Of a DNA stretch of 64,000 nt, positions 47,327-64,000 are shown one piece after another. The translations under genes and the position numbers were made by a program. The number at the start of each line of letters is the position of its first letter. Positions within the stretch are counted from its first letter, which is position 1. The notes beneath the pieces were generated by a model. It searched no databases and had not been told where the DNA came from. It worked only from the letters and a program-made list of their open reading frames with translations. Source of the DNA: Klebsormidium nitens (taxonomy: Eukaryota > Plantae > Klebsormidiophyceae); NCBI GenBank assembly GCA_000708835.1, contig DF237077.1, forward strand, positions 1-64,000, given 5' to 3'.

Positions 47327-50300
47327 TTAGGTCCGAGCTCCGCCCCACTCGAGAATTAATCTGTCCGGGGAGTCTTGCCAGCTTTCCGCGAATTTCTTCA
47401 TGTCGATCTGCACATGATAAAAGCAGTCCTCATGTAGTGGACCACACAGAATACTCTCGATAAGAAGATTCCACTCTGAGCATAGAGAGCGCGCCGCATG
47501 GCATCGAAGCATCTCACGTGGTCTGCACCACTCCGCTTGCTTTAAGAAGGACTTTTCATTCCTGCTCCTGAACGGTCATCGAATCTCAAAGGACCTGACT
47601 GCGAATCGACTGCAGTTCTCAACTGAGCGCATAAGTCACACTATCCTTTTGGTCGTGAAGTTTCATAATCCTGGTGCTTGGAGTTCACCTTGCGCCTCTG
47701 TTCCTGGAACCGCTGCTCCCGCTCCAAATACGCACGCTGCTTGTCGTCCGCCTGCGAACCTCCCAGGCCCCACACCTCCACGTCCTCCACTCTCGCTTCC
47801 ACGCCACCATAGCCCTGCAAGGTCATCGCAAACCGATTCGTTGAGAAGTATACGTCTCGGATTGACCCGTATCGATGGATTCTTTCTGTGCAGCGCCGGA
47901 CCTTGCCTAAAATCCTTGTGATCTCTTTCAATCAGAACTTCGGTAACAAACGGGATTTTGAAAGACCCGAGATCGCATTGTGCGAATCTTCACTTCCTCA
48001 ACGTGCCTGAGAAGGAGCCTGTCCTCGAACCTCGGCACCTTGAGTGCAAGTCCAACTCCATGACAATGCACTTCGCACGTAAGTAGAGAACAGTAACCCG
48101 GCTATCGACCGACTTGAGGACGCACGAATCTATTCGAGCACTGATTGCAGCTCGCGGGCCCTGGGGCGCATGCTATTTGTCTCTGAGCTCGACACAACGA
48201 TCGCCCTGAAGAGCCACTGCTCGTTAGATCCATAGATTGGATCCGAACACCGCCTGCCCGGTAAAGAACAGACGTCAAGCGCCAGGTAAACGGCCTCCCA
48301 GTTCGAACGCACTGACCAGGTCAGGCACAAGGGCACCCGGTTGAAAGGTCTTGTCGACTGCGTGGTGCCTGACGGTCACTTTCCCTGGGGTGGCGTTATC
48401 GTCCAGCCAGACCCGTTCCTTTCCGAGCGAGCCCCCAAGTCCCAAGCCTTCCGGTAGCGGGCTGGTCTGGTACCCCTGGCCTGCTACCTTCGCGTGACAA
48501 AAGACGACGTTGGATTCACGACCTGTGCAAAAAGAGAAAGGGGGGTACATTGATGGTGACGTCATGCTTCCGTCACGCTTTCGAGCAACTTCGAAGACAG
48601 ATACAAAGATCGAATCTCAAGGGATGCTCTGCGAGTGTAATAGACGCGTGCTATCGTGCGGCAGTGTGCGGAGGAGAATTAAGGAGCTTGAGGCTTGAGG
48701 AGTGCGTGAAGGACAGCATGTTTTCGAACACAGGACAAGCGGGTAGCGTCGAGGACACTAAGACAAAGTGCAGACTGGAACTCTGCGACCGAAAAAAGAA
48801 CGCCAACCTCTTTTTTGCACAGCCATCTAAGAAAAAGGCGACGCTCTCGTTGCCCTGAATCAGAGCCTCGAACCAAAATGGAAATTGCGCTTAACAACGG
48901 GTCATTCCGTGGAAGACGAGGGAAGTCGCTCGTCTTGGAAGTGCTTCGTGTAGATTTACTTTGTGGAACAAAAACGGCCAGGCGCGGAGTAATGTAGAAT
49001 GGTTCATCTGGCAGGACGGAATACCGCAAAATTCTGCTAGTCCAGGAACGGAATAGGATAACCAGGACAAGGATTTTACCGGTCGCTCGAAAGACCTTGA
49101 AGGTCGGCTTGAGGGCGAAGAGGCAGCTGCTGGACGATCCAAAGAAGTCTCTCCGGTTGGCCAGGCCGTCCGGGAGCAGGGCTGCAATGCTCCAGCCTTC
49201 GCCACTGCAAATCAGTGTCAAAGCGTATGTGAGAAACAGTCCCTAATACGGTTAAGGCCACCAACGTCAGCTTTTGCTTGGACAAGAGGAAGCAACCTAT
49301 CATACGCCGGTGACTTTGCGAAGCCTTGCCCGTTGTGGACACCAGAGAGATTGTGGAGTACTTTGGGTGATTAAAAAACGCTTTAGGTACACAGCTTCAA
49401 GTCGGTGCCATGGTCGGACACTCGCCCCGGAAGCAAACAGTAGTGTCAGCTGAAGGGTTGCAACTTGCAGGCCTGCCAAAAGAAGTCTTGCAATAGAAAA
49501 GACTTACAACTTCACCATAACAGTTGGCATAAGGATGGAGTATTGCTTTGGTTGAGCGGTCAGTCTAACGAAGAGTCTAGGCATAGAAGGTTAACGAGCG
49601 TAGCGTTTGTAAAACAGGGTATGCTAATCACCCTTTCAACTTCGAACGGCTGAAACGATTCTCAGTGGCCCCTAGAAGGATATGCAGAGACAACCTTACC
49701 CCGCAAAAGGGCGCGCTGCAATGATGACAAGAACAGTGCCAGTATAACCTTCCACACGGCTCATGAACCGGTTCATGCCCCGCCCGTTCTCAGAGGACCT
49801 GTACAACAAGTGAGTGGAGTTTTTGACCGATTATCTCGCACCATCATCGGAGGGGTATGAGATTGATTCCATTTTTACAAGATTGGGCTTCCGGCATCTG
49901 AAGATACGCTTGAGCTTCTCAACCGAAAATGCTCTCAAGCTTCAAGAGCATCACTACTTAGAGATATCTACATAGAACGTTCATATGGCTTCTCAAAAGG
50001 GCCAACTGGCGTCATCGGACAGACTGAGATAGATGCAGAGACGTTTATCCCCTCATGTAATCCAGCAGGGAGAATCTCTTCCTGTTGGTCAAGAGTCGAG
50101 CCAACATACGTATCCAAGCAGCAATTTCCTCACAAAGTCCTACCTGTACAGAAGGCGTGGGTGTCCTATCAGCCTCGTCAGGTCTCCTCCGCCGCAACCC
50201 AGGTCAATCAGCCGTGGCCCTACACCCCACTTTGCAGTCCCGGAAGTGAGCGCTTGCCCCATGCTCCATGCCACTGCGGGTGTCAGCATACCCGATTTCC

Positions 50301-51658
50301 AACCCCCACCCTCATCTCCTTCTGAGTCTTTCTGCAGCCCGCTGTCACCTCCAGGCTCCGACGAGCTCTCATTGCCAGCTTTCACATCCTGTTCTGCCCC
50401 TTTATTTTGTTCATCACTGCTTCCTCTTTCACTGAGAAAGCTTTGGCACTTGCACATAAGGAAAGCCTCCAAGATATTTGACAGGCCCGGCACTGTGGCA
50501 ACAGCCCAGCTGACTAGCTGCTCTGCCGTTAGCGTGCTCTCCTTTTCTGGTGAAGCACTGGCAGACTCCCACGCGCCGTTTACTAACGCACGAACATCTG
50601 GCCACTGAATGCTTGCTGAAGGACCATCGCCCCTTTCTGGAGCTTTCCCCTTGGGCCCTGCTCCTTGTCCCCTGTTCCAAGCTGTCAGGTACCATGATGC
50701 CAAAAGGATGCCCTCCAGGCGCTCCCTGGAGATCTTTTCACTTGCGTGAATTGCACTAGATACTTCGCTGGGGGCTGAAGTGCTAGCTGTACCACCTGAC
50801 TGAACCCTCTCTTCCCGCCACTGTTTCCCCTCCCCAGCTTCGCTTCCAAGAAAGGTCCGTATGAAAAGATCAATCTGCTCTTTCTTGCTGCCCAATCTTC
50901 CGCTCTGCGCTACTCCTCCCAAGAACACGGCATAGGTCACTCCGTCTGGGGCGTTCCCAAAGACTTCAGTACAGAGCTGCGCGTTGAGGGATTCCAGCGC
51001 ATGCTGCAGTGCTGTCGGACACTCCTCTGGTATGTGGAGATCAAAGGTGGCCTGCAATGATGGGAAGGTAAACTGACATGAGCTCCATTTGAAGACAGCG
51101 ATGGCAGCCAAAATTTTTTGAGTGCTTGAAAGACCGGGTGACTGACCTGACCTCCTGTCTCACGACCTGATTTCTGCATTGTGGTGGTAGCACATTCCCA
51201 CTTTTCCTGGCAACATTTGACCTCCTTTTTCCAAGTTTGCATGTTGAGGTCCAGCCCAATCAATCTGTACGAACATAGCGAACACTAACTTCCTGTCAGA
51301 ATCGATTCCTCTAGCTTCCCATAAGCACAATGATCTTGCTTCCTTCACTTGATTGATTGAAGATGGAATTGCGTTAGACATACAAGGCATGCTATCACAG
51401 TCATCAAAAGCTGGCGGGGCCAGCTTGCTGGTCTATGCACACTGATGGCAGCAAGTCAGCAGAGCTCACCTTTAGATCTGCATGCATGACCGGTCTTGCA
51501 CTGCCGCTGCCACTGGTCGCTCCTGAGCGTTTTTCTGAAAGGATTTTGAATGCTGACTGCAAATGCACAAGGTCTCCACTGGATTGAAAGAGAGCCTCCA
51601 GCTTGGCTCTCTCCGCATCCCCCGGGCTGGCATGCTGTTGGGAGGCCTGATTGCCCAT
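47327..51658 (-). CDS. TLDc-domain protein with predicted N-myristoylation (plant At5g39590/MEAK7-like), multi-exon
   Basis: Starts MGNQAS. TLDc exons read HPRLLYR, FFGSSSSCLFALKPTFKVFRATGK, GLGLGGSLGKERVWLDD, VTVRHHAVDKTFQPGAL, VEDVEVWGLGG and EQRFQEQRRK|IDMKKFAESWQDSPDR. Confidence 0.85.
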
Positions 51659-52985: not shown

Positions 52986-55733
52986 ATGAGTTTTCACAAC
53001 ATAACCGTAACTCAACATAATATCGAGAATACTGTCACTTACAACCATCTCCGCTGTCCGTTCCTTGACGTTCTCTCTGGCTTTCCCTCGTTCTTTTCTG
53101 CCGACTTTTTGTCAATCGGAAACCTTCGCTTTCTCCGCTCTCTAGATTCTCGTTTCTCGCCAAATCCTGACTCAGACAATCCTACCCTCGCAGCTCCGTT
53201 ATGCGATGCGATTGAACTCTGGCTCACCATAAACCTTCCAGATGTCCCCTTCGAGCACTGGTTCGGTACCATCATCTGAATCGAAGTTCAGCAACTGTAG
53301 CACTTTTCATTTAAACTTATGTTTGGACTCATGCTCAAACCGTCGTCCGAAGTCTGCGTTTGCTGTGCCGAATCACTTCTCTGCAGTGCTCCTTTGTAGA
53401 CTTGGTTCGGAACAATTACGCTGGACGTTTCTCAAGTGTCGAGCTTCCGGTTGCAATGATCCAAGCAGTTGCAGCGACAAAAGCGGGTCGAAGCGCGGAG
53501 CGGAAGTGCACGAGATGGAACTGACGGCGAACGCAATGAAGGACCATTTGCACGCGCTGACGGCAGCGATCAGCCGGATTGGATCCGTTGTGACGTCATC
53601 CAGAAGCTAAGGCTGAGGAGAAGGAGTCGGAATCGTCGAGAGCAGATGGAAAAGGACAGGAGGAACTCGGAGGGAACGAAGGAAGGAAGGGAGGGAAGAA
53701 CAGCGGATACGGGCCGCGGTGACGATGGGAGTGATCTGTAAGTGGAGCTGAGTTTGGTGACTTTCCCTTAAACGGAGTTAGAGTCCTTGGAATTTATAAA
53801 TGCTCTCAGAAAGGTCAGGTTTGCGGTGGTGTAATGGAGAACGGGATTAAGGGTTATTGGAGACTTTCGTTCTCTTCGAAGAGCTGTGGTCAAAGTCCCC
53901 CAGAGACGGGTCTGGACTGCGCAGCAAAGTCTACTTTACAGTTCGCCTTGGCGTTCCCTTTTGAGGAAGCTAAGTCAATGCAAATGCAGCTTCTCATCCA
54001 GAAAGATAGTGTGATGGCGTCTCCTCGCGCCGGCAAATTAAAAGCGGATCTGCACCGTGCAGAAATCTACATTTGCGAGACCCACGAGAAAGCGACTTCG
54101 CGGGCTCACGAAGCGTCCACGCGGCGCGTCGCGCCGATACGCAAGCTTTGCGCGCAGAACAAGGGTTGCGCGACCGCAGCCCTTCGCGAGAAGCCTGGTT
54201 TGCACGACGTCTTCCAAGTGGGGCCGCAGGAAGAGCGTCGCCCATGCATAGCGCGGCCATTTGGCATCGTGGGCCCAGATAAGAAGGACGAGCGAAGTAT
54301 AAAGGAGTCGTCCTCGGCGAGCACAAGTTGCGGTCCTCCTCTTTGAAGGAGAGCCGCCCGCGTCCGCCGGCACGGCGAGCGGCCGACGCCATTCCGGAAT
54401 ACCTGCGAGCCAAGTCGGGACTGCGACTCGTTGCTGCAGGTCGGCACGCGATTGTCGCTCTCGTCAGCCAAGTACAGACGCTGGTTTTTCTGCACGTCTA
54501 AGGTAGACCGGTCTGTCTACTTCAACCCGTGGCTTATCCACCCGTTCCGGGGCGCTCGAGTGGTGACTCTAGTGGTCTTGCTTTTCTAAGGTGTCAACCA
54601 GGAGGTTGAATATGCATACATTTTCGCCTCTGGTTTCTGATCAACCAGCGGAGCCTCACATTCCGGAAAGCTTTGCACCTATTCTTGGACTGTGGGAAAT
54701 CTGGGTCAAAGACTTGAAAGGTTGTTCGATAAAGGCTGGTACACATTGACGGCATCCGATGGGGACGGAGAGCATCGATCAGGATCAGCGGCAGCAGAGC
54801 AGCCACGTGTCGACCGGGGTTAGGCGCAGATAAGACGGAGAAGGTGCGTGTCTCTCTCGTGGTGGATATGCGGCTGGCGGCCCGAGGCAAGCTGGGAGCC
54901 TCTAAAGGGTTCCCCAGAGAGGATCTGCTGAGGGTTGCGCTGGAGAGTGCGCTGATGCGGAAGCTGGCGCAGCGCGCAAAGCTGCGCGAGATGCTTGCGG
55001 AAGCGAATGGCCAAGCGGCGTACGGTGTTGATAGGTTCCGGGGCTGAAGAAATTTTCCAGACGGAAAACGAGGAGGAAGATTGGTTATTAGAAAGACGAA
55101 GTACAAAGGGGCTGACGTTTTGCGTGACGATGAAAGGATACACAAAGCAGTGCGTTACGACTACGAGGGAGCAGATACTAAATTGGAAAATAGAGCGGTC
55201 ACTGAGTCGGCGGAAAGTGCAGGCGAGCCGGAGAGTAATTAAAGTGACGTGCAGAGCCCGATGATGGAGGACTGTGCACCATATGTTTTGGATTGAACCT
55301 GCTCGTTGGAGCAAGTATAGTCTCTCGTCATCACACATGTGCATCCCACGATTCTCATGTCGTCATGACTGTTGCTGGCATCCCACTCCTGCCTTTGCTG
55401 AGAACGGATTGTACACCTCCTTCGGACCCACGTCAGTTTCTCTTCACGAGATCGTAAGAAAAACCGACGCAATGATATCATGATCAATAGCTAAGGCTTG
55501 GACAGCAGTGGTGCAACTGATGCGTTGATATGTTGATACCCCGATATTCTGGTGATGGTGGCAGTTTACAGAGTATACCAAACTCTCCACTTTGAATCCG
55601 CAGATTGGAGTTCACCGGTTGCACAGAGTCCAGACACATGAACATGGGAGATAATAAAACACAAGGCCTCTAGAGGGGCATCACTCTGCATTATTGCCAA
55701 TTCATGTCCTTATCATGGCATGGAATTGAACCT

Positions 55734-55791
55734 GCCGCGCTTCCGTGTCAATGAAGTGACGAGCCGCGCTTCCGTGTCAATGAAGTGACGA
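55734..55791. repeat. Perfect 29-bp tandem duplication
   Basis: gccgcgcttccgtgtcaatgaagtgacga x2, downstream of the tectonin stop. Confidence 0.9.
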
Positions 55792-56007: not shown

Positions 56008-58958
56008 TTAGGGGTGCGTGATGGTGTATTTCCAGATGCTGTCCTCGTGACTGGTTCCCCAGACTGAGTCGTAGCCGGAGTCGATGTTCCGGAGGCGGCC
56101 CTCCTTGGGGTCCCTGTGCCAGGCACCATCCTTGGAGTCGCTCAGCACCCAGCGGTAGATGACGTCGTTGGTGTCGACAGCCCACACGCCCATGACGCCA
56201 GTCGTCACCTGTAATATGTTTCGCGCGTGGGTGTCAAGTGAGGAATCGGAGCTTACAGAGCACCCGTAAATGGGCCCATACAAACCAGATACAAGGTCTT
56301 GTCGGACCTTTATCCTCTCTTCAAGTCGGACCTTTCGCAGTAAGAGCAGAAATAGGCAGAGGATGGCAGCAACGAGCGATTTCCTAGGCACACGGAAGGT
56401 TGTACGACTTTCACGCGACAGGCGCATGCGTATTCTGCCAAGTTTTACCCTCGAGGTGGGTGGAAGAATCAGAAGAGAAAGAATGGTTCGTGAAGATTTG
56501 GTCGACCCTCAACTTTCATTGTCGACCCATTACGTCGTTTGTCACAGGTTGGGCGAGCTCAACTCTCATTGTCAACCCATATTCCGCTCTATCCAGAACG
56601 AAAACTTCTAGCATTCATTAAAGAACGGGTCTCCAAACAAACAACCTAATGCCGGCAAAGAATATCGAGAAACGCTGAGAGAAGGGGACATACGGTGAGA
56701 TGAGATGAGAGTGTCTTACGTGCTTGATGATGTCCTGGCCACCAGGCCCGGGGACGTACACAAACTCGTTGTCAACGCGGCGGAAAACTTGCTTGGTGGC
56801 GTTGACACCCCACACGTCGCCAAAGTCGTTGGTGTCAATCTGCGCCAGCCTTCCGGGGACGACGTCCCAAAGTCCGGTGTCTGTGACTGGCTCTGCACAA
56901 ATTCCGATGATTCCGTTGATTTTGTGCATCATGGGCGGAAATCCACACTCATACCTGACGACAGTGCGCAGTCAAGCAGCGAAAGCTGTTTCGCGCTTGT
57001 GCAAGCGCTGCTAAAAGTCTTCAGTGAATACCAGTACGTTTGCAGTCGTACGTTCCTGAGTCGCTCGACTTCAAAACAGAAAATGTCACTGACTCGCCTG
57101 ACAATAACACATCCTGAAACCTTTGGATTGCGGAGGTGGAGATCCATTTCCGGAGCTGTTTGAGCTACTGCATGAGCAAGTGGGCTTTTGAAGCTATTTG
57201 GAAAAGCGAACTTGGAGATTCAGCTCCTTTAGGCACTTGACGGCGATTCAAGTTGCCAATCAAACCAAGTCGATTGGTCACAGGAGGCACTGCTTTTGAA
57301 GAGTGACAGCACGGTGCTTACTGTTGTTTCTCTTCCAGATCTGATCGTCCGCGCTGACACCCCACACCTCCTTCCCGGAGGCCACGTGCTTCAGCTTGCC
57401 AGCGACATTCTTCCACGTGGTCCCATCCCTGCAAATAGACAGCTAGATCAGTTGGCGAAGCTAAATGGTTCACCTGGTCATAGCTTCCCTGCAGAACCTG
57501 ACTCGAAATACCAGCTTGCACTATTGTCTGCAAAGACGTGTGCAACAAGGTTGCAACACCGGTGCAGTGTGCAATTGGCTTTTACCAGAAGGACCCGAAT
57601 CAATCTCAAGGAGCCAGACTGCCAAACCCTGGCGCCGTAGGGATCACTCACATGCAAGCGCAAAAGAATTCACGATTTAAGGTGATTAGTGTGTAAAAGT
57701 CCATCAAAACGAGTTACCATCGCTTCTGCAGATATGAACACAGGTTGGAACGTTTTTCGACAGGCAGCCCTCATGCACAAGCTTACAGAGATCCCCCAGA
57801 GATCAATTCTATAAGTGCTCCGAGTCTATCTAATGTTGCAGAGTCACGACATCTCACCAGTGCCAGACATCGTCGCTGGGGCTTACGCCCCAGTGGCCCT
57901 TGGCTCCGGTGGAGATCTGCTTCAACTTTCCTGTCGACTGGACTGCCCAATTGTTGTTCGTCCAGTGGTAGATATCATTCGTGACGGTTGTGCCAATAAG
58001 CGCACCCCCGTCCCCAATGCTGATAGTCCGGAGCTTCCCAGGGACGTTCTTCCACTCGACGGCGGCGGTCACAACGGAAGACTGCAGTAAGAGGAGGAAG
58101 GGCTGCTGTTGGATCGGGGGCTTGGACTTGCAGCGCATACTGAAGTTGTGGAAAACTTTTTGCATGCTCAATTGGTCATAGCCAGGTCGGGCGTAGGATG
58201 AAGAATGAAGGAGTCATAGCAAGTTGCTACCCCCGTCTGATGGAGTAAGTGGCATAGGTAAGCTTACAGAGGGGAGAGGTTTGCTGATTGATATTGAACA
58301 AAAATGCAGAAGATGCATCAGCTGATCCAAAGACAACAGACGATGAGAGAGCACTTCCAAAGAAGTCATTGAGGCCAAGGCTTCCCGAACCATCAGGAAA
58401 CGATTGGGGATCAGCTGATCTCAACGTGACCACAGGGATTGCGTTAGGTCCTTAAGTGATAGCTACGTCACCTTCTCAAACATGAGAGAGTTGAGCAAAA
58501 CCAGATTCCAGATCTAAAGCTGGGAATATATCTATGTGCTGACAATCACTTCATGAGAGCTGAGAGCAGTACTCAGGTGCACACCTTGACACAAACATGC
58601 AGTTGACATATGACTGTTGCTGTCTTCGTCAGCTCTGAATGACCCAACTAATCTGGGTAGTCCCTCAGAGGGAAGCGTTCCTCAAAAGTCAAATACAACG
58701 ATCTTGTCTTGAACAGCTGCAGATCTCACGCTGACAGATATAAAGCATGAGGATCACGTCAGCACCAGCATTAAAAGTTCGGTGACTTACCCTGGCCTTC
58801 AGCTGTTGTGCGGGCGCCTTGGGAGCAGCCAGCTTGCGGCCAAAGATGGGGGACGCAAGCTGCAGGGGGGTAGACTTGGCGCCGAAAGCGCTGGGGGATT
58901 CGGAGAGCATCTGGCTGCTGAGCGCAGCCCGGGTGGTCAGAGCTGCAGAGGAAGCCAT
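56008..58958 (-). CDS. Six-repeat tectonin-type beta-propeller (lectin-like) with N-terminal plastid transit-peptide-like leader
   Basis: Exon 58791-58958 (MASSAALTTRAALSS...QQLKAR) splices in phase to 58081 (SSVVTAAVEWKNVPGKLRTISIG). Repeats of the W..V.G.L..I..G...VWGV...D.I.R type lie at ~58060, 57960, 57400, 56870, 56760/56200 and 56110. Stop at 56008-56010. Confidence 0.8.
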
Positions 58959-59590
58959 GGTGTCAGGCAATGAGAGGCGGCTTGGCTGATCGAATGTGGA
59001 TTGGGAATGTGCTTGGCAATTGAGGAGCGGAATGCGGATCTGAAGAATGAGCTTTTCTCATGACGTTTAAATACCTGCTTGTGCACTGCAGGGTCGGCCC
59101 TAGATCTCCTACGGTGCCCTGAGTCTGCTCAAGTTCAACTGATCTACCTCAGATTGTACGTGCTGAGAACCAGTACCGGCGCCAACCTGCTGGTCGGGCA
59201 AACGGCCCCTCACTCCCATTTAACTAAGTTGTCTAGTGTCTCCTGTCTTTCCGCTGAAGCTGAGAGACTCAATAGGAAAACTCATTCTACTTCGTTCTAC
59301 TGCAGGTTCTGCAGCTTGTAACGGTTGCCATAGACTTAAATGGTCCAAAGTAGTATCTAGGCGCACCCAATATGCTAGCAGGGCAGCTGCTCAGATACAT
59401 CTGCGATCATGGGCAGGCTTGTCGGTTAAACAATATACCTAGGATGACATTGACACAAGGTATGCACATGCAAACCTAAGTGTCTTCAAGGCAATCCGTG
59501 ACGGCCGTTAACTACTGTAGGTGACCGGGCGCCGGTAAAGCCATATCAGGTCACAGGTGTAATCGGAGTCAGTAGGTAGCTGCTGCTACG

Positions 59591-62009: not shown

Positions 62010-63699
62010 CTATCCTGTTCCTTGCGTGAGGGGAACGCTCCCGCGCACGTCGACATATAGCTCAGCATCCTGCTGCGTGAGGCCAGCTGACGTCAGGCCG
62101 TTCACGAGGGCCTGCTTGTACGTTTCTGACGGGGGCCGCGTACTAAATGCTCCGTTCAGAAACTCACCGGCGTAGTCTTCCGAGCAACTGCAGTGGAACG
62201 TAGAGACGAATCGTTATCGGGAATGGACCGGACCTTGTTTTTGTGAGACATCGTGCAACCCTGACATGCCTCCGCAAGACTGGCAGCTCGTCGAATTGTG
62301 AAGAAAGGGATGGACAGGAAGGTTACTGATGGGGCGGCGTATTCAATGCTCCGGCTCAGGAATCTCCGCGTAGTTTGCCGAGCGGCTACGACTCTTAAAT
62401 GGGAGTCGGCACTCCCTTCTGCTAGGAATTGGCACTATGCCTCCATACGACTTGCAGCACGTCATAACGAGGCGGAGGAAAGGCGAGAATCCAAAGGATC
62501 AGTGGCAATCCGCCGGACGAGAGAGCGCGCCGGACGAACGTTTACTTGGTCATGGTGGTAAGAACAAAACTGGGCGGTGATCCACAAAAGAATAGATCAG
62601 AAAGAGATCGCTGCTCACGTGAATGTTAGAACGGGTTCCCCGGCATGGTCTCCGAGATAGAGGATGTTGCCATACCACCGGTCCTGGAACAAGAAAGTGC
62701 AGCGATCAACATTCTGAAGCACCATCAAGGCAAAGTCAGGCCCGAGAGTGCGAGCACAAGGTACATGCAATATGAGTTTCCCAGGGATTCAACCATTCGG
62801 CAAGCGCTTGTCACGACGTGAACTTGACATTTAGAAACCAGATGTGGGCGAAGGGTTCTCCCTGATTGCGTTCTCGTCGCATTGTCAATCACCACTCCGT
62901 TCGAGATCCTCAGCTGGATTGCAGGGACCGCCGCTAGGCATGATTGGATGGCTCGAAGCAGCCGCTTTCCCCTCTCATACCCTTCCCTTTCCCGCCAATC
63001 TCTGCAGAGTGACCCTCACCTGCAGGGAAGCCAGGCCGGGCGGCGACGCGTTTCCCGAGCGCAGCTCCGGCAGGTCTGCTGCAGCTATGAATGGTGTCGC
63101 CACGTCAGAAGGAAGTATCCGGTTCTCCTGCGCTACCACTTGGTTGAACTGCTCCAGCCTGGAAACACGAAAACGGACTCACGTTTCGTGAGCACGTAGA
63201 CGCAGAAACAGCAGCGTCCAGACGAAAGCGACCCGCGGAAACCAGGGGACTCACTTCTGCATACACGGCCAGTCTCTCTTCCAAGTTGCTTACAGCGTGA
63301 CTTCTGCCGGTAGTCCGTACTCTGCAAATCAAAGACAAACCGGACCAAAGAACTTGCTTCCATGAATCAAAGGAGAAGACAGAAGAGGGGGGGTGCACAT
63401 AGTTTACGCCGTCTCTTCTCCACTACTGAAAACTGTCCCGACTTTACCCATCGACGAAACAGGGCCCATCGCAAGATGCAGTCGCAAGATTCCGCTCACG
63501 TGATCCGGTAGGCCCGCAGGATCGCCGTCGATTCCGCCCCCGGCATATTGTACGGCAGCAGGAAGGCCACACCGCCATCGCCCCACCGCGCAGTCGACTT
63601 GTGGCCAAAGAAGAGCCGTCGGCGGACCAGGAATGTCTCTTTGGCGGTCGGCGGAGCTGGGTCCGTCGTGCCAGCGCAGGCCGTACCCATGATGTTGAG
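62010..63699 (-). CDS. 3' part of a gene encoding the plant HDA5 C-terminal-type (gamma-glutamylcyclotransferase-like) domain; the 5' end lies beyond the window. Exons 63500-63699, 63020-63158, 62619-62683, 62010-62187
   Basis: The spliced product is CAGTTDPAPP...RRLFFGHKSTARWGDGGVAFLLP...RAYRIT|LEQFNQVVAQEN...LQ|DRWYGNILYLGDHAGEPVLTFT|CSEDYAGEFLNGAFSTRPPSETYKQALVNGL...DAELYV. This matches the remembered plant motif series HRLFFG..S..WG.GGVAFL / YRITLEQFNDV..QEN / WY.N..YLG. All junctions are GT-AG and in phase. Confidence 0.75.
62322..62392 (-). repeat. Intronic degenerate copy of the acceptor and first ~65 nt of the last exon of the HDA5-C-like gene
   Basis: Minus strand gtagCCGCTCGGCAAACTACGCGGAGATTCCTGAGCCGGAGCATTGAATACGCCGCCCCATCAGTAAC versus the real gcagTTGCTCGGAAGACTACGCCGGTGAGTTTCTGAACGGAGCATTTAGTACGCGGCCCCCGTCAGAAAC (62187 downward). 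Confidence 0.8.
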
Positions 63700-63764
63700 C
63701 TGCAGCCACAGGGTATTGAAGTGGTTGTGACAGCCATTATGGCCAAGCATAATAAGCCACCTTC

Positions 63765-63830
63765 CGGGAACGGGTGGGGTTAGTATTGGAGTTCAGGGTG
63801 GGCACCGGTGCGGAGCAGGTGTTGGAACAA
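63765..63830 (-). repeat. Dispersed repeat copy (inverted) in an intron of the HDA5-C-like gene
   Basis: Minus strand acctgctccgcaccggtgcccaccctgaactccaatactaaccccacccgttcccgg, closely matching 52925-52985. Confidence 0.65.
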
Positions 63831-64000
63831 ATGTCAATATCAGCTTTGTCTTGATGTAACTTGCTCTTTCATTACTCTTTCCAGAAAATCATGGTTGTTA
63901 GCCAGCTTGATCAGAAGACCGCGCAACGTACTTTGAGGATTCCCCCCTGCCATGGTGATATCTTTCCGACTCTGTAAGCACGGGCTTGCCACTTGTCCAG

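Follow-up and report, generated by a model that had tools for sequence, protein, structure and literature searches.

The stretch of DNA analyzed here (64,000 nucleotides, nt, hereafter the window) comprises the first 64 kb of scaffold DF237077.1 of the alga Klebsormidium nitens (assembly GCA_000708835.1). Its minus strand carries the nuclear gene KFL_001280110, which in our hands as well as in the existing annotation spans positions 56008-58958 and whose sequence agrees base for base with the database record. Five exons specify a protein of 290 residues, and a script-based comparison established that the GenBank entry GAQ82891.1 (a "hypothetical protein" of K. nitens, working identifier P0001) is the exact product of these five exons. 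Judged by its sequence, this protein is a stand-alone propeller of the tectonin family that is preceded by a leader of the organelle type. The gene consists of the following parts:

59066..59073, minus strand: TATA-box-like element TATTTAAA, read from the sequence, 108-115 nt upstream of the ATG
58791..58958, minus strand: exon 1, 56 codons including the start, encoding a Ser/Ala-rich basic leader; donor GTAAGT, phase 0
58082..58790, minus strand: intron 1, 709 nt, between the leader exon and the propeller, with a pyrimidine tract and a CAG acceptor
57858..58081, minus strand: exon 2, encoding SSVVTAA (the last seven residues of the leader), blade 1 and most of blade 2; ends in phase 2 in the codon for Trp131
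58061..58072, minus strand: codons for V60-T61-A62-A63, from a motif scan, a candidate stromal processing site of the type V-x-A / A
57322..57428, minus strand: exon 3, encoding the rest of blade 2 and blade 3; ends in phase 1 in the codon for Lys167
56720..56892, minus strand: exon 4, encoding blade 4 and the first half of blade 5; ends in phase 0
56008..56208, minus strand: exon 5, encoding the second half of blade 5 and blade 6; stop codon TAA at 56010-56008

All four introns (709, 429, 429 and 511 nt) begin with GT and end with CAG, and they lie in phases 0, 2, 1 and 0. The start codon at 58958 stands in the context ACCATGG and is the first in-frame ATG downstream of an in-frame stop. Exon 1 is of coding-type composition, with a G+C content at third codon positions (GC3) of 0.75 as compared with 0.79 for the whole coding sequence and an overall GC content of 0.475 for the introns. 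The first-pass annotation of this DNA had proposed that exon 1 joins exon 2 in phase to give SSVVTAA/VEWK, and the same model is found in the GenBank annotation. The TATA-box-like element is a possible core promoter. As a word search from exon-sized queries cannot detect a protein of 290 residues, an exhaustive HMMER search was run with exon 2 alone, and this retrieved GAQ82891.1, in which residues 1-56 correspond to exon 1 and residues 57-130 to exon 2. The protein was found on a single contig, i.e., on the genome scaffold. Full-length analyses are based on the database record, while Pfam and PDB were also searched exon by exon.

The part of the protein encoded downstream of intron 1 was assigned on several grounds. 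Each of exons 2 to 5 separately matches Pfam family PF19193 (Tectonin), while exon 1 has no Pfam match; exon 2 alone reaches an expect value (E) of 2.5e-12 for Tectonin in Pfam and of 2e-9 for Tectonin 2 in the PDB, and with the whole protein as the query, the match to PF19193 reaches 134.8 bits (E=3.7e-39; cut-off 30). The Tectonin domain covers residues 64-290 and is the only domain in the protein. It is composed of six tandem repeats of about 35-44 residues, starting at residues 64, 99, 134, 173, 208 and 252, with the repeat motif W...PGxL...WGV(N)...(I/V)-aromatic. The aromatic positions are retained in all six blades, apart from Phe for Trp at the start of blade 5 and Ile for Trp in blade 1, and the scaffold is therefore intact. 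With an alignment of 80 sequences as input, AlphaFold2 returned a model with a mean predicted local distance difference test score (pLDDT) of 84.9 and a predicted template modeling score of 0.76; residues 71-290 score 79-98, mostly above 90. The model has 24 strands, six blades of four, and the first strand is formed by residues 65-69. When it was compared with the PDB by Foldseek, Tectonin 2 and carp fish-egg lectin came out well ahead of all other propellers. The mature part has a mass of 25 kDa and does not contain a single cysteine. Because profile match, predicted fold, Foldseek and PDB sequence search agree, we regard the prediction of a complete six-bladed tectonin propeller, and nothing else, as confirmed. 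Six tectonin repeats without any further domain had already been noticed in the first-pass annotation, and Pfam, AlphaFold2 and Foldseek concur with it; structure prediction, which it had named as a check, indeed yielded the tectonin propeller fold.

Preservation of the scaffold does not extend to the residues by which Laccaria bicolor Tectonin 2 contacts its sugar. In that protein, the sixth site is formed by Ser200, Asn216 and Tyr222 together with Trp3 of the next blade (structure 5FSC; PMC6359319), and Asn of the Asn216 type is present in all six blades (PMC6359319). According to our mapping via the HMMER alignment, Ser200 corresponds to the small residue that precedes Leu in PGxL, Asn216 to Asn in WGVN, Tyr222 to Tyr in IY and Trp3 to the Trp with which a blade begins. 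Among 79 relatives, the Asn position is occupied by Asn in 62-85% of the sequences, depending on the blade. In the three Klebsormidium proteins, i.e., GAQ82891.1, a K. nitens paralogue and the nearest relative from Klebsormidium subtile (see below), the position reads as follows from blade 1 to blade 6:

GAQ82891.1 (P0001): T, S, S, N, D, S
K. nitens paralogue P0164: D, D, D, Q, D, D
K. subtile P0095: N, N, D, N, D, N

The only blade of GAQ82891.1 that bears Asn has Phe at both of two aromatic positions. Since Asn is kept in this one blade only, the specificity should differ from that of the O-methyl-sugar sites of Tectonin 2. Sugar binding by GAQ82891.1 is still plausible by analogy with the family. 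The initial suggestion of a lectin of the innate immunity type is weakened by the replacement of the sugar-contacting Asn in five of the six blades, and envelope peptidoglycan, which had been named among the potential ligands, would fit poorly with a leader of the stromal type. Starch or the head groups of galactolipids as ligands are speculative.

The leader comprises residues 1-63, i.e., all of exon 1 and seven residues from exon 2. It consists of 24% Ala and 24% Ser plus Thr, contains five Pro and has an isoelectric point (pI) of 11.7. A single acidic residue (E20) stands against seven basic ones, three of which are Arg. Seven of the first 20 residues are Ser or Thr, the net charge of this section is 0, and only one basic residue is present within the first 27. 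The Kyte-Doolittle hydrophobicity does not exceed 1.16 in any 9-residue window, so a hydrophobic core as in signal peptides is missing, and the helical moment is low (maximum 0.24 over 18 residues). In the AlphaFold2 model, the leader is devoid of secondary structure, with a pLDDT of about 50. The homology to relatives begins at V64/W66, leaving the leader outside of the folded domain. A motif scan revealed the motifs FGAK and FGRK within the leader, and V60-T61-A62-A63, a short and weak motif, 1-2 residues ahead of strand 1. Among 77 relatives with an N-terminal propeller, 55 have a start of the signal peptide type, defined as a 10-residue window of at least 2.2, and GAQ82891.1 and its paralogue lie at the low end of the hydrophobicity range. 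A mature part free of cysteine suits a non-secretory compartment.

Richness in Ser, Thr and Ala, scarcity of acidic residues, lack of structure and a V-x-A-A motif are textbook features of stromal transit peptides. We interpret the leader as an organelle-import signal, most probably a transit peptide for the chloroplast stroma, and consider it moderately probable that the propeller resides in the plastid. The transit peptide-like character of the leader had been recognized in the first-pass annotation, and its composition, charge and disorder, the lack of a signal peptide core and the V-x-A-A motif before the fold all bear this out; the one acidic residue it had counted is E20, one of 63. If the proposal is correct, the 290-residue precursor would consist of an unstructured basic leader rich in Ser, Ala, Thr and Pro (residues 1 to about 62/63) and the propeller (64-290). 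The leader would direct import into the stroma, with cleavage inferred to occur around V60-T61-A62/A63, and the propeller, once inside the plastid, would serve as a soluble and multivalent binding module whose ligand, going by the family, would most likely be a carbohydrate or glycoconjugate.

The proposal requires that exon 1 is indeed the beginning of the coding sequence, and intron 1 offers another candidate. Its 3' end (58082-58171, minus strand) is open in the frame of exon 2 and contains in-frame ATGs at 58165 and 58138, which are followed by a basic stretch and then by PFLLLLQSSVVTAA, with a Kyte-Doolittle 9-residue maximum of 2.06 that confers a weak resemblance to a signal peptide. 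The mature part of GAQ82891.1 does not contain any Met before residue 230, and translation must therefore start upstream of exon 2. The region of PFLLLLQSSVVTAA simply results from translation of the pyrimidine tract together with the CAG acceptor, and when the corresponding frame of the paralogue is read back from exon 2, a stop is encountered after seven codons without any ATG, so the paralogue gene needs an exon 1 of its own. A start at either intronic ATG was provisionally rejected on account of the translated pyrimidine tract and the lack of conservation of the read-back in the paralogue.

The paralogue just mentioned, KFL_003060060 (P0164), is encoded on scaffold DF237255.1 (L001 6001-10531) and was found by a word search with a two-sequence profile. 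It has 305 amino acids (aa) and is 38-39% identical over the propeller. Its gene likewise has five exons, with introns at positions homologous to those of KFL_001280110 and in the same phases (0, 2, 1, 0), and a phase-0 intron divides a 75-codon leader exon from the propeller. The paralogue's leader has 76-80 residues, starts with MMASS..., is basic (pI 10.4) and rich in Ser and Ala, and carries WGRK at the place of FGRK in GAQ82891.1; V74-K75-A76-S77, which conforms to V-x-A-[AS], precedes the fold. The two proteins share blade-specific signatures such as IDTND.GD.WG and VYVPGP.G; the leader of KFL_003060060 differs in being longer and in containing more Arg and Gly. Because the paralogue has the same leader-exon architecture, the view that exon 1 belongs to KFL_001280110 is strengthened, and the presence of a leader exon in both of these diverged genes argues that the leader is part of the transcript and under selection. 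In the paralogue, Met81 lies two residues ahead of the first Trp, and a leaderless cytosolic isoform arising by internal initiation is therefore conceivable. The gene upstream of the paralogue (L001 1-3125) encodes a product of 845 aa with zf-C17orf113 and DUF4371 domains, which are typical of transposase-derived genes.

Several observations weigh against a plastid address and against a lectin function in that compartment. A transcript-fragment search with residues 1-130, which span the junction between exons 1 and 2, did not yield any match. The similarity between the two paralogous leaders is not significant, as an alignment score of 31 was attained in 275 of 2000 shuffles. The nearest propeller, that of Klebsormidium subtile P0095 (a transcript from EukProt EP00243), which is 47-49% identical blade by blade, is preceded by an N-terminal Pfam CAP domain (PF00188, PR-1; residues 7-126) at the place of the leader, and members of the CAP/PR-1 family are usually secreted. 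The full set of Tectonin 2 residues is kept in none of the six sites of GAQ82891.1, and lectin activity is thus not assured. The leader contains R41-K42-L43/A44, an R-x-L/A pattern of the mitochondrial type. Finally, in algae the first 20 residues of plastid leaders and those of mitochondrial leaders have overlapping Ser/Thr contents and charges (PMC12531127), and for this reason the plastid address is a reasoned prediction.

The last two points lend some weight to the idea that the leader is a mitochondrial or dual-targeting presequence and the propeller wholly or partly mitochondrial. The leader is basic, poor in acidic residues and rich in Ala, as are the mitochondrial presequences of algae, and R41-K42-L43/A44 resembles an R-3 processing site. 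This is opposed by the low potential for an amphipathic helix, the scarcity of Arg (three in all) and of positive charge near the N-terminus (one within the first 27 residues), five Pro dispersed over the leader, and the frequency of Ser/Thr at the very beginning. By land-plant criteria, low amphipathicity, few Arg, dispersed Pro and a start rich in Ser/Thr point to the plastid. The same criteria are also found in PMC12531127, according to which the enrichment of Ser/Thr in plastid leaders starts in streptophyte algae. We rate a mitochondrial or dual destination as quite improbable.

The absence of import altogether is an unlikely but somewhat better alternative. The protein would then be either a cytosolic lectin with a disordered extension or, if exon 1 were mis-annotated and translation began within intron 1, a secreted one. 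Such a reading would agree with the fact that described tectonins are cytosolic or secreted, fungal Tectonin 2 being cytoplasmic, and it could draw on the CAP domain of the K. subtile relative, on the weakly hydrophobic intronic sequence and on the missing match for the 58791/58081 junction. With regard to the intronic start, the origin of the hydrophobic run and the early stop in the paralogue have been described above, and exon 1 is backed by its coding-type GC3, the strong context of its ATG, a donor that conforms to the consensus and the matching phase; it is also used by an independent genome annotation. For the protein as a whole, a long leader exon kept by both paralogues at 38% identity speaks for selection on the leader, and a stromal transit peptide is the reading that we prefer.

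The CAP domain in K. subtile and the leader in K. nitens occupy the same place, which leads us to conclude that the N-terminal module has been exchanged within a small family. Traces of a CAP domain were not found in intron 1 or in the rest of the window, and word, profile and two metagenome searches did not reveal any orthologue from another species. Fusions of CAP and tectonin occur repeatedly: CAP precedes tectonin in P0095 from K. subtile, a signal peptide is followed by tectonin and then by CAP in the metagenome proteins P0185 and P0189, and both domains are listed for the metagenome proteins P0188, P0191, P0192, P0196, P0200, P0201 and P0206.

We also asked where the family comes from. 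With the full mature region as the query, a single-sequence word search retrieved only the protein itself and one match of 33% identity; the relatives with 47% and 38% identity were missed and recovered by the two-sequence profile, and blanks in this type of search are therefore not to be read as absence. The best matches outside of Klebsormidium are multidomain proteins of bacteria (Deltaproteobacteria, Alphaproteobacteria, Myxococcales, and Oleispira or Marinomonas), with identities of 33-40%. Among animals, named tectonins from fish, frog, copepod and priapulid are 30-35% identical, a Pythium protein is 28% identical, and Laccaria Tectonin 2 is 30% identical in the structure comparison. The profile search did not return any other green-plant homologue among the named matches; because most matches carry no taxon label, absence from other plants is weakly supported. 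Two metagenome scans did not detect any relatives; the query was the single protein in the first and an alignment of three sequences in the second. On this sequence evidence, we are dealing with a small tectonin family that, among green plants, was seen here only in Klebsormidium.

Two maximum-likelihood trees were calculated. In these, the three Klebsormidium proteins form a clade of their own on a long stem, with a support of 100 in the Shimodaira-Hasegawa-like approximate likelihood ratio test (SH-aLRT); the backbone lacks resolution, with bacterial sequences interspersed among eukaryotic ones, and a sister group is not apparent. Horizontal acquisition of the family from bacteria, followed by the gain of introns and of the leader exon, would be compatible with each of the readings of the leader discussed above. 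It had been raised at the outset and keeps its place as a possibility, albeit one that we view with some doubt, and the trees do not resolve any donor. The bacterial nature of the best matches and the missing green-plant homologues speak for it, while the isolated position of the Klebsormidium clade, the interleaved backbone, four spliceosomal introns and a host-like composition speak against it. Given these introns, this composition and the divergence of the paralogues, a transfer, if there was any, must be old. A more elaborate scenario, in which the tectonins specific to Klebsormidium were captured long ago, perhaps from bacteria, a transit-peptide exon was added and the product, with its remodeled binding sites, would recognize a plastid glycan or glycolipid (starch, galactolipid head groups), appears rather unlikely to us.

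The remainder of the window provides the following context. A 29-nt unit is present in perfect tandem duplication at 55734-55791, 217-274 nt past the stop codon, in what is presumed to be the 3' untranslated region or flank. The upstream neighbor on the same strand is a histone deacetylase gene (62010-64000, minus), and a spacer of about 3 kb without annotation lies in between. A 182-aa orphan open reading frame (54014-55047) without a Pfam match is located on the opposite (plus) strand, and a gene for a TLD-domain protein is found at 48008-51658 (minus). A second tectonin copy was not found within the window. Scans for promoters and terminators and for tRNAs were of the bacterial type and uninformative at this eukaryotic locus.

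Known tectonins are defense lectins that act extracellularly or in the cytosol. Our literature search did not yield any link between tectonins and chloroplasts or Klebsormidium, nor any report of a tectonin in an organelle, nor any paper citing the gene identifiers KFL_001280110 or KFL_003060060, and KFL_001280110 is not listed in the expression table of one high-light study on K. nitens. If the proposed address is correct, the Klebsormidium proteins would represent the first case of organelle residence in a lectin family that is otherwise known for innate defense outside of the cell or in the cytosol. Should the leader target the plastid, a sugar-binding defense fold would have been re-addressed by the gain of one leader exon, and this in an alga closely related to land plants, which would hint at an unrecognized form of glycan recognition in plastids. 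The two paralogues and the CAP-fused relative would then constitute a natural series for the exchange of N-terminal addresses. Without such targeting, the gene would simply encode a lineage-specific tectonin.

How does the protein from K. nitens compare with known systems? With stromal transit peptides of streptophytes, its leader shares the length of an extension of about 60 residues, the MA- start, an uncharged beginning rich in Ser, Thr and Ala, few acidic residues, scattered Lys, Arg and Pro, FGxK-like motifs, a lack of structure and a V-x-A/A end. Membership in this class is assigned by resemblance alone, and the passenger domain is unreported in plastids. The closest structural counterpart of the propeller is L. 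bicolor Tectonin 2 (5FSB/5FSC), likewise a stand-alone propeller of six blades with four strands each and about 225 residues, with template modeling (TM) scores of 0.85-0.87, root-mean-square deviations of 2.0-2.2 Å and about 30% identity (5fsb: 0.85, 2.2 Å), a sequence match of E=6e-18 and the common repeat motif W..PGxL..WGV..(I/V)-aromatic. It differs in being leaderless, a cytoplasmic fungal defense lectin for O-methylated mannose or fucose. Carp fish-egg lectin (4RUQ/4RUS) has the same fold (TM 0.81-0.84, 4ruq 0.84; sequence E=4.5e-16), and this lectin and the group of tachylectin-1 and lectin L6 are also stand-alone propellers of comparable size. These animal tectonins, in contrast, are only 21-30% identical and are secreted via signal peptides (e.g., the L6-like fish proteins P0166 and P0171), whereas the protein of the alga has neither a hydrophobic N-terminus nor any cysteine.

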